A stretch of 64,000 bases of DNA from the NCBI RefSeq assembly GCF_022045235.1, contig NW_027266298.1, forward strand, positions 1,550,001 through 1,614,000, read 5' to 3'. Each line of letters opens with the position of its first letter. Within the stretch, counting starts at the first letter, position 1. The DNA comes from Haliotis cracherodii. Its lineage: Eukaryota. Both the position numbers and the translations under genes were made by a program. Of the stretch, positions 17,826-17,915 are shown piece after piece. Below the pieces are notes generated by a model that saw nothing but the letters and a program-made list of their open reading frames with translations, ran no database searches and was not told the origin of the DNA.

Positions 17826-17915
17826 GTGGGGGGTGACCCGAAGGTCTACTTGCTGCCGAAGCAACAAGTCCCACCCGTAGACCTAGAGAGGAAAAAAGCA
17901 CAAAAAGTTAATGTC
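17826..17915 (-). promoter_or_regulatory. 3' splice-acceptor-like site plus structured 5'-UTR RNA motif (family A)
   Basis: CATTAAC-TTTTTGTGCTTTTTCCTCTCTAG|GTCTAC GGGTGGG [hairpin with TTCG loop] GACCT TCGGG TCACCCCCC. Confidence 0.65.

Follow-up and report, generated by a model that had tools for sequence, protein, structure and literature searches.

The window analysed here, a stretch of 64,000 nucleotides from Haliotis cracherodii (contig NW_027266298.1, positions 1,550,001 to 1,614,000), contains a tandem U2 snRNA array on the minus strand. A search of the window against Rfam at the gathering threshold finds only U2, in the form of eight U2 3' parts, each preceded by a poly(A) run that is joined to AGUAUCUG. 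Seven U2 5' fragments lie upstream of them and were found as exact or near-exact pattern matches: one at 18000-18024 (minus strand; U2 nt 1-25), which starts the leader of family A, and equivalent fragments starting at 27038, 33914, 40788, 47901, 51021, and 58117. Every unit is thus split at about U2 nt 33-35 by an insertion. The insertions are LINEs whose ORF2 has an APE endonuclease, a reverse transcriptase, and a C-terminal zinc-binding domain (Pfam domains: Exo_endo_phos, RVT_1, zf-RVT) and whose ORF1 carries a CCHC knuckle, which is the Tx1-clade, U2-specific Keno type (PMC4640811; PMC4494074). In one DNA sequencing run, the U2 spacer (33900-34880) has a summed depth of about 70-100 thousand, against 200-700 over the family C element (28950-33700). 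If so, most U2 units in the species would be uninterrupted and the window would be an insertion-saturated patch of the array.

Between the U2 5' fragment and ORF1, each element has a U-rich leader followed by a conserved motif of approximately 57 nt (all coordinates below are on the minus strand). In family A, the RNA-sense sequence at 17826-17915 reads CATTAAC..TTTTTTCCTCTCTAG|GTCTACGGGTGGG (as RNA, CAUUAAC..CUUUUUUCCUCUCUAG|GUCUACGGGUGGG). It comprises a branch-point-like word CAUUAAC (17907-17913), with its A about 25 nt upstream of the AG; a pyrimidine tract (17885-17899; CUUUUUUCCUCUCU; 93% pyrimidine); an AG (17883-17884), with the candidate cut between 17883 and 17882; and the motif itself (17828-17882). 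The ORF1 start (17730-17798; MAWASAV...) is the first AUG after the AG, and in this copy ORF1 is cut by a stop after 22 codons. The locus L015 elsewhere in the genome (contig C35, 1.540 Mb) has the same leader, motif, and first codons. The other six families have the same arrangement. In family H1 the AG plus motif lies at 20869-20924 and the ORF1 AUG at 20855. Family B (26696-26900) has three tandem units, each made of a pyrimidine tract, AG, and the motif (AG at 26899-26900, 26832-26833, and 26752-26753; ORF1 AUG at 26675). In family C the AG (33764-33765) plus motif spans 33705-33765 with the ORF1 AUG at 33693, and a sister copy with the same sequence over this stretch lies at 40580-40640. 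Family D (47636-47762) has two tandem units (AG at 47761-47762 and 47691-47692; ORF1 AUG at 47620). In H2 the AG plus motif lies at 50807-50865 with the ORF1 AUG at 50795, and in family E it lies at 57905-57963, where the ORF1 AUG (57904) directly abuts the C-run of the motif. At 20925-21010, the poly(A) of family B is followed by GTCTCTGTTCTT, which resembles U2 nt 36-47, and then by the leader of H1. Family B therefore seems to have inserted into the U2-like part of H1's own leader, which would mean that the leader remains a target.

All 11 motif copies in the window are preceded by a pyrimidine tract and YAG|GTC. A preliminary description, made from the sequence alone, had reported such a 3' splice acceptor without a conserved donor in front of ORF1 in all seven families; this observation is confirmed and is stronger than was first described. 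A pattern search of the whole genome found the same arrangement in 29 copies, and no true copy that begins with GTCTAC and lacks the AG. A covariance model of the motif then found 69 copies, of which we aligned 53 (49 distinct). The AG is invariant in all 49 and sits directly on the first base of the motif, while the tail nucleotides that follow it vary (position +1 is G, A, or U; +2 is U or A; +4 to +6 also vary).

To examine the sequence upstream of the AG, we grouped the copies into 41 lineages by less than 70% ungapped identity of the upstream 45 nt; because these lineages are still related, the tests overstate independence. Position -3 is C in 34 lineages, T in five, A in two, and G in none, whereas position -4 is relaxed (A 11, C 18, G 2, T 10). 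Position +1 is G in 39 of 41. Pyrimidines make up 73-95% at -5 to -14, falling to about 0.6-0.7 further upstream (mean 0.82 against 0.58 in a separate comparison). Branch-like YTRAY words occur at -40 to -11 in 24 of 41 lineages, compared with a mean of 11.2 and a maximum of 21 in 2,000 shuffles, and with five of 41 in a control window at -70 to -41; examples are UACUGAC, CACUAAC, GCUAAC, and UACUAAU. By a hand count, the branch-like A lies 16-31 nt upstream of the AG in about twenty copies, a variable spacing as for branch sites. The AG-free run upstream has a median of 49 nt, against 15 in full shuffles and 33 in 10-nt block shuffles that keep local composition (maximum 48 in 1,000; P < 0.001). 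AG is depleted in the region -50 to -1 (39 against 54 expected) while GA is not (65 against 55). This is the full grammar of a U2-type 3' splice site, including the free -4 position and an AG-specific exclusion zone, and it has been kept while the surrounding sequence turned over.

The motif that follows the AG is a tight three-way junction supported by covariation. Its G-run/C-run stem is 84% paired and has compensatory changes; hairpin 1 is 92.8% paired, with changes on both sides at eight of its nine pairs; hairpin 2 is often C(UUCG)G (GACC-UUCG-GGUC in family A), and its closing pair covaries (CG 26, UG 12, UA 9). The two single-nucleotide junction strands change together: they are U and U in most families, and A and A in the family A-like class, which also has UAGACC instead of UGUGACC. 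The 5' tail, AG-RUCNAC (GUCUAC after the AG in family A), is unpaired in this structure, and the neighbors of the AG in the tail vary more than it does. The alternative offered in the preliminary description, that the AG is simply part of an RNA helix, therefore does not hold. Pairing of the tail with the 5' strand of hairpin 2 would give an HDV-like double pseudoknot, but this pairing has no covariation and is broken by the AGAUC variants of the U1-type copies (see below), and hairpin 1 has 7-9 bp with a variable loop, so that there is no P3/L3/P1.1 core. Rfam searches of three motif regions at E-values up to 10 returned no ribozyme or other family, and ARAGORN found no tRNA-like gene. Weak full-length U2 alignments of leader plus motif rest on the intact U2 5' part, and we accordingly rejected a derivation of the motif from U2 stem-loops III/IV.

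The same module is not confined to U2-type elements. It occurs in relatives whose leader starts with AUACUUACCUGGCA, which is U1 nt 1-14, and which appear to target U1 snRNA genes (loci L098, L100-L102, and L115 at G000:C32 1.998-2.027 Mb and C51 234-241 kb, and L114 at C6 9.288 Mb, all with leaders that start with ATACTTACCTGGCA; G000 and C denote the genome and its contigs). The C51 and C6 copies lie next to or near U1 arrays (C51 202-226 kb; C6 9.319-9.362 Mb). In most of these copies the distance from U1 +1 to the AG is only 63-67 nt. For U1 genes, PMC4640811 lists only a DNA transposon (Dada-U1). A pattern scan of metagenomes gave five chance hits and one true relative, L061 (FXBE01013215.1; 1369 nt), a Keno-like element in a U2 gene of an unknown organism. 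It has a U2 5' fragment, an 80-nt leader, AUUAAC, a U-rich tract, CAG|GUCUAC, the motif with a different hairpin 1, and an ORF1 (P0010) that is about 45% identical and ends in DPP-stop like the abalone two-ORF families. Two word-index protein searches with ORF1 gave one Haliotis rufescens homolog and then nothing, while a full HMMER scan gave 1221 relatives.

We then asked whether the leaders hold a partner donor. On an approximate 5' splice-site weight matrix on which the consensus scores about 8.8 bits, the best leader GT scores 4.8 bits or less; most leaders' best GT scores under 2.5 bits, many are negative, and the single candidate in L061 scores -9.6. The lack of a conserved donor stated in the preliminary description is thus also confirmed. 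Recurrent words such as RG|GUGAYU and GGA|GU would give introns of only 37-85 nt, score poorly, and are absent from the short leaders, so that a mini-intron in cis remains a minor option. Leaders of 63-80 nt, found in the U1 type and in L061, leave no room for an ordinary intron. Back-splicing to a downstream donor is not favored either: among elements C, E, D, B, H1, and H2, strong 5' splice-site look-alikes (6.5 bits or more; counted without a random expectation) number only 0-1 per 5.6-5.9 kb element, none at a conserved place, and zero in the ORF1-only elements. The acceptor-like signal is therefore an orphan.

Other features of the leaders bear on how ORF1 is expressed. Upstream AUGs are present in 22 of 32 leaders, about as many as composition predicts (mean 1.3 against 1.9 expected). 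A conserved (C/U)AUGGAGU word, an upstream AUG in good context, sits in the leaders of H2 (approximately 50940) and of two further copies, L107 and L113. In contrast, the first AUG after the AG is the ORF1 start in all intact copies, even across 142-158 nt of tandem motif units. Ribosomes therefore cannot simply scan from the snRNA +1, and something happens at or after the AG, either processing or internal entry. The first part of each leader folds back on the snRNA 5' end: GAAGCGA or UUGCGAU pairs with U2 nt 1-8 (in the window at 33850-33914, 58055-58117, and 47840-47901), and CUAAGUAU pairs with U1 nt 1-7 (in L098; this segment, CTAAGTAT, looks like a 5' splice site with C at +1). The resulting 5'-terminal helix is conserved even in L061 and supports a 5' end at snRNA +1 for the inherited RNA. 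Every copy we examined keeps the leader, and no spliced or cut retro-copy was seen among them.

In a check named beforehand, we looked for junctions at the AG in assembled (Logan) contigs of three sequencing runs guessed to be RNA, which hold small shares of the sequence and were aligned to 28950-34880. They cover family C thinly, with an element-to-spacer depth ratio much higher than in a DNA run, which hints at transcription. No joint or clip appeared at 33764/33763, and the depth figures suggest that some contigs run from the motif into the leader; however, depth over the site is only about 0-5, such contigs drop rare forms, and we infer that they break at the shared motif, so that the result gives no support and at most a weak argument against splicing.

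Taken together, the pyrimidine tract and CAG|G form a selected, spliceosome-type 3' splice-site signal with no credible partner donor in the element. The analysis itself establishes that the elements are Keno-like LINEs, that their inherited leaders start with the 5' part of the U2 or U1 snRNA in which they sit, that each leader runs through a U-rich, AUG-tolerant stretch ending in a branch-like word, a pyrimidine tract, and N-C/U-AG, and that the next base starts a conserved three-way-junction RNA, with no other AUG before that of ORF1 in intact copies. What we infer beyond this is that the elements are read from the promoter of the interrupted snRNA gene, that SF1, U2AF, and U2 snRNP recognize the signal, and that a share of the transcripts is cut at the AG and joined to an exon supplied from elsewhere, in trans or from a poor upstream GU in families whose leaders are long enough. 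Splicing of this kind would remove the snRNA-derived, AUG-laden leader and make an ORF1 message whose 5' UTR begins with the folded motif, while unspliced RNA, which keeps the snRNA homology, would remain the transposition template; the retention of the leader in every copy examined fits the latter idea. We hold this reading only tentatively, at a probability of about 0.4. The AG depletion is expected if a competing AG could actually be used, but there is no RNA evidence and no credible donor, and spliced leader (SL) trans-splicing is unproven in molluscs (PMC3795323). No spliced retro-copy is seen although LINEs usually copy the RNA they were translated from. The zero spacing between the AG and the motif is more natural for a processing site or a motif element than for an ordinary acceptor, and a stable junction right after an exon join would hinder cap-dependent scanning. 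The interpretation given in the preliminary description, that the spliceosome processes the U2-promoter transcript, possibly as an outron for SL trans-splicing or through a weak donor in the U2 leader, so that an snRNA-type transcript becomes mRNA, is thus supported only in part: the sequence grammar agrees with it, but a weak donor in the leader is unlikely to be the shared solution because some leaders are only 63-80 nt long and hold no usable GT.

The closest competitor, which we consider unlikely but not far behind, is a look-alike site that is bound but never spliced. In this view, the single-stranded pyrimidine tracts on both sides of the three-way junction would recruit U2AF, SF1, or PTB-type proteins on the unprocessed transcript and, together with the folded motif, act as an internal translation-entry, export, or RNP-assembly platform for ORF1. 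Pyrimidine-rich spacers do follow the motif before the AUG, the motif sits 0-52 nt from the AUG in one to three tandem units, AUG-laden leaders rule out simple scanning from the cap, no credible donor exists, and the retained leader is as expected if the translated RNA is unprocessed. The region is also moderately unpaired in ensemble folds (0.51-0.54, against 0.35 for the motif), and structured 5' elements of R2 and L1Tc are reported to drive cap-independent initiation (Ruminski 2011; Sanchez-Luque 2011). Binding alone, however, does not predict the depletion of AG but not GA, the C/U at -3 with a free -4, or branch-like words at variable spacing, which are constraints of the catalytic steps.

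Less likely still is a non-spliceosomal 5' end, formed by self-cleavage or a host nuclease at or next to the AG, or by a 5'-to-3' exonuclease stalling at the junction. The zero spacing in all copies, the conserved but unpaired tail, the AUG-free region downstream, and the tight three-way junction in tandem copies, an arrangement also seen in flaviviral exonuclease-resistant RNAs, would agree with it, and co-transcribed R2 elements use HDV-like ribozymes (Eickbush 2010, cited in PMC4494074). However, the absence of an Rfam match and of an HDV-type fold speaks against it, the upstream tract, branch-like word, and AG depletion are left unexplained, and cleavage would discard a leader inherited in every copy examined. 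We regard an internal transcription start at the A of the AG, with the U2/U1-promoter transcript serving only as the transposition template, as very unlikely. The C before and A at the start fit the pyrimidine-purine rule, and the zero spacing and AUG-free downstream region fit a 5' end there, but the A/T-rich words lie at a variable 16-31 nt (hand count) rather than at a fixed TATA distance, position +3 is G rather than A or T, internal tandem units would each need a promoter within 13-23 nt of spacer, and AG depletion is not explained. It is about equally improbable that the AG merely hitch-hikes with the motif and the tract is a by-product of a U-rich leader. The leader is U-rich overall (T 0.40) and the lineages share ancestry; yet pyrimidine content rises from about 0.6 to 0.8-0.95 only in the last 15 nt, the -3/-4 contrast, YTRAY enrichment, and AG-specific depletion exceed composition-matched shuffles, and the upstream sequence has turned over completely between lineages.

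How LINEs lodged in snRNA genes are expressed is an open question. Such promoters are not known to yield mRNAs (e.g., Dahlberg and Schenborn 1988), and the papers on Keno, Utopia, and SINEU that we read give no direct data on how these snRNA-linked elements are transcribed or processed (PMC4640811; PMC4494074). A conserved module of an orphan acceptor followed by a folded RNA, shared by U2- and U1-targeting lineages, offers a concrete and testable handle: either the spliceosome is recruited to remake the 5' end of the transcript, or splicing-factor binding sites are reused for export or translation. It is tempting to hypothesize, although we consider it unlikely on present evidence, that these LINEs carry a natural pre-trans-splicing cassette, made of an snRNA-derived leader with no donor, a branch site, a pyrimidine tract, and AG, and use it to capture a capped 5' exon in trans, either an as yet unknown spliced leader or host or snRNA-derived exons, and so turn a non-coding snRNA-type transcript into a translatable mRNA. 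If the signal is used in trans, it would also be the first sign of trans-splicing in molluscs.

The elements share with Keno (Kojima and Fujiwara 2004, as described in PMC4640811 and PMC4494074) the domains of ORF2, the insertion site in U2, and the CCHC knuckle of ORF1. Those papers report Keno from vertebrates, lancelet, and hydra but not molluscs, and in the papers we could read we found no description of a 5' leader module, an acceptor-like signal, the three-way-junction motif, or mollusc or U1-targeting Keno-like LINEs; 5' processing of co-transcribed, target-specific LINEs is itself a known theme. Engineered pre-trans-splicing molecules (SMaRT) have the same order of parts (a 5' segment without a donor, a spacer, a strong branch site, a pyrimidine tract, AG, then a coding sequence), but they are an artificial design, and here the 5' snRNA fragment is folded back on an antisense segment of the leader, so that a role as a binding domain is not evident. 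R2 and other co-transcribed LINEs with HDV-like ribozymes at their 5' end are likewise target-specific, read from the promoter of the host gene (as we infer for the elements here), and provided with a structured RNA just upstream of ORF1 that could define the mRNA 5' end and support cap-independent initiation; in our elements there is no Rfam match, the nested double-pseudoknot features are lacking, and the motif lies downstream of an inherited leader rather than at the element's 5' edge. The outrons of SL trans-spliced genes in nematodes, flatworms, hydra, and tunicates are also capped, U-rich 5' segments without a donor that end in a branch-like word, a pyrimidine tract, and YAG just upstream of the start codon, whereas the acceptor here abuts a conserved folded RNA and no SL-bearing cDNA or retro-copy was seen in the material examined. 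Finally, SLACS/CRE/CZAR and NeSL-1 are LINEs inside spliced-leader RNA genes and are transcribed from the SL promoter. They too are lodged near the 5' end of a small Pol II snRNA-like gene and carry its first nucleotides, and they are expressed from that gene's promoter, as we infer for the elements here, but they belong to different clades with restriction-like endonucleases and gain the SL sequence directly by insertion, not through an acceptor.
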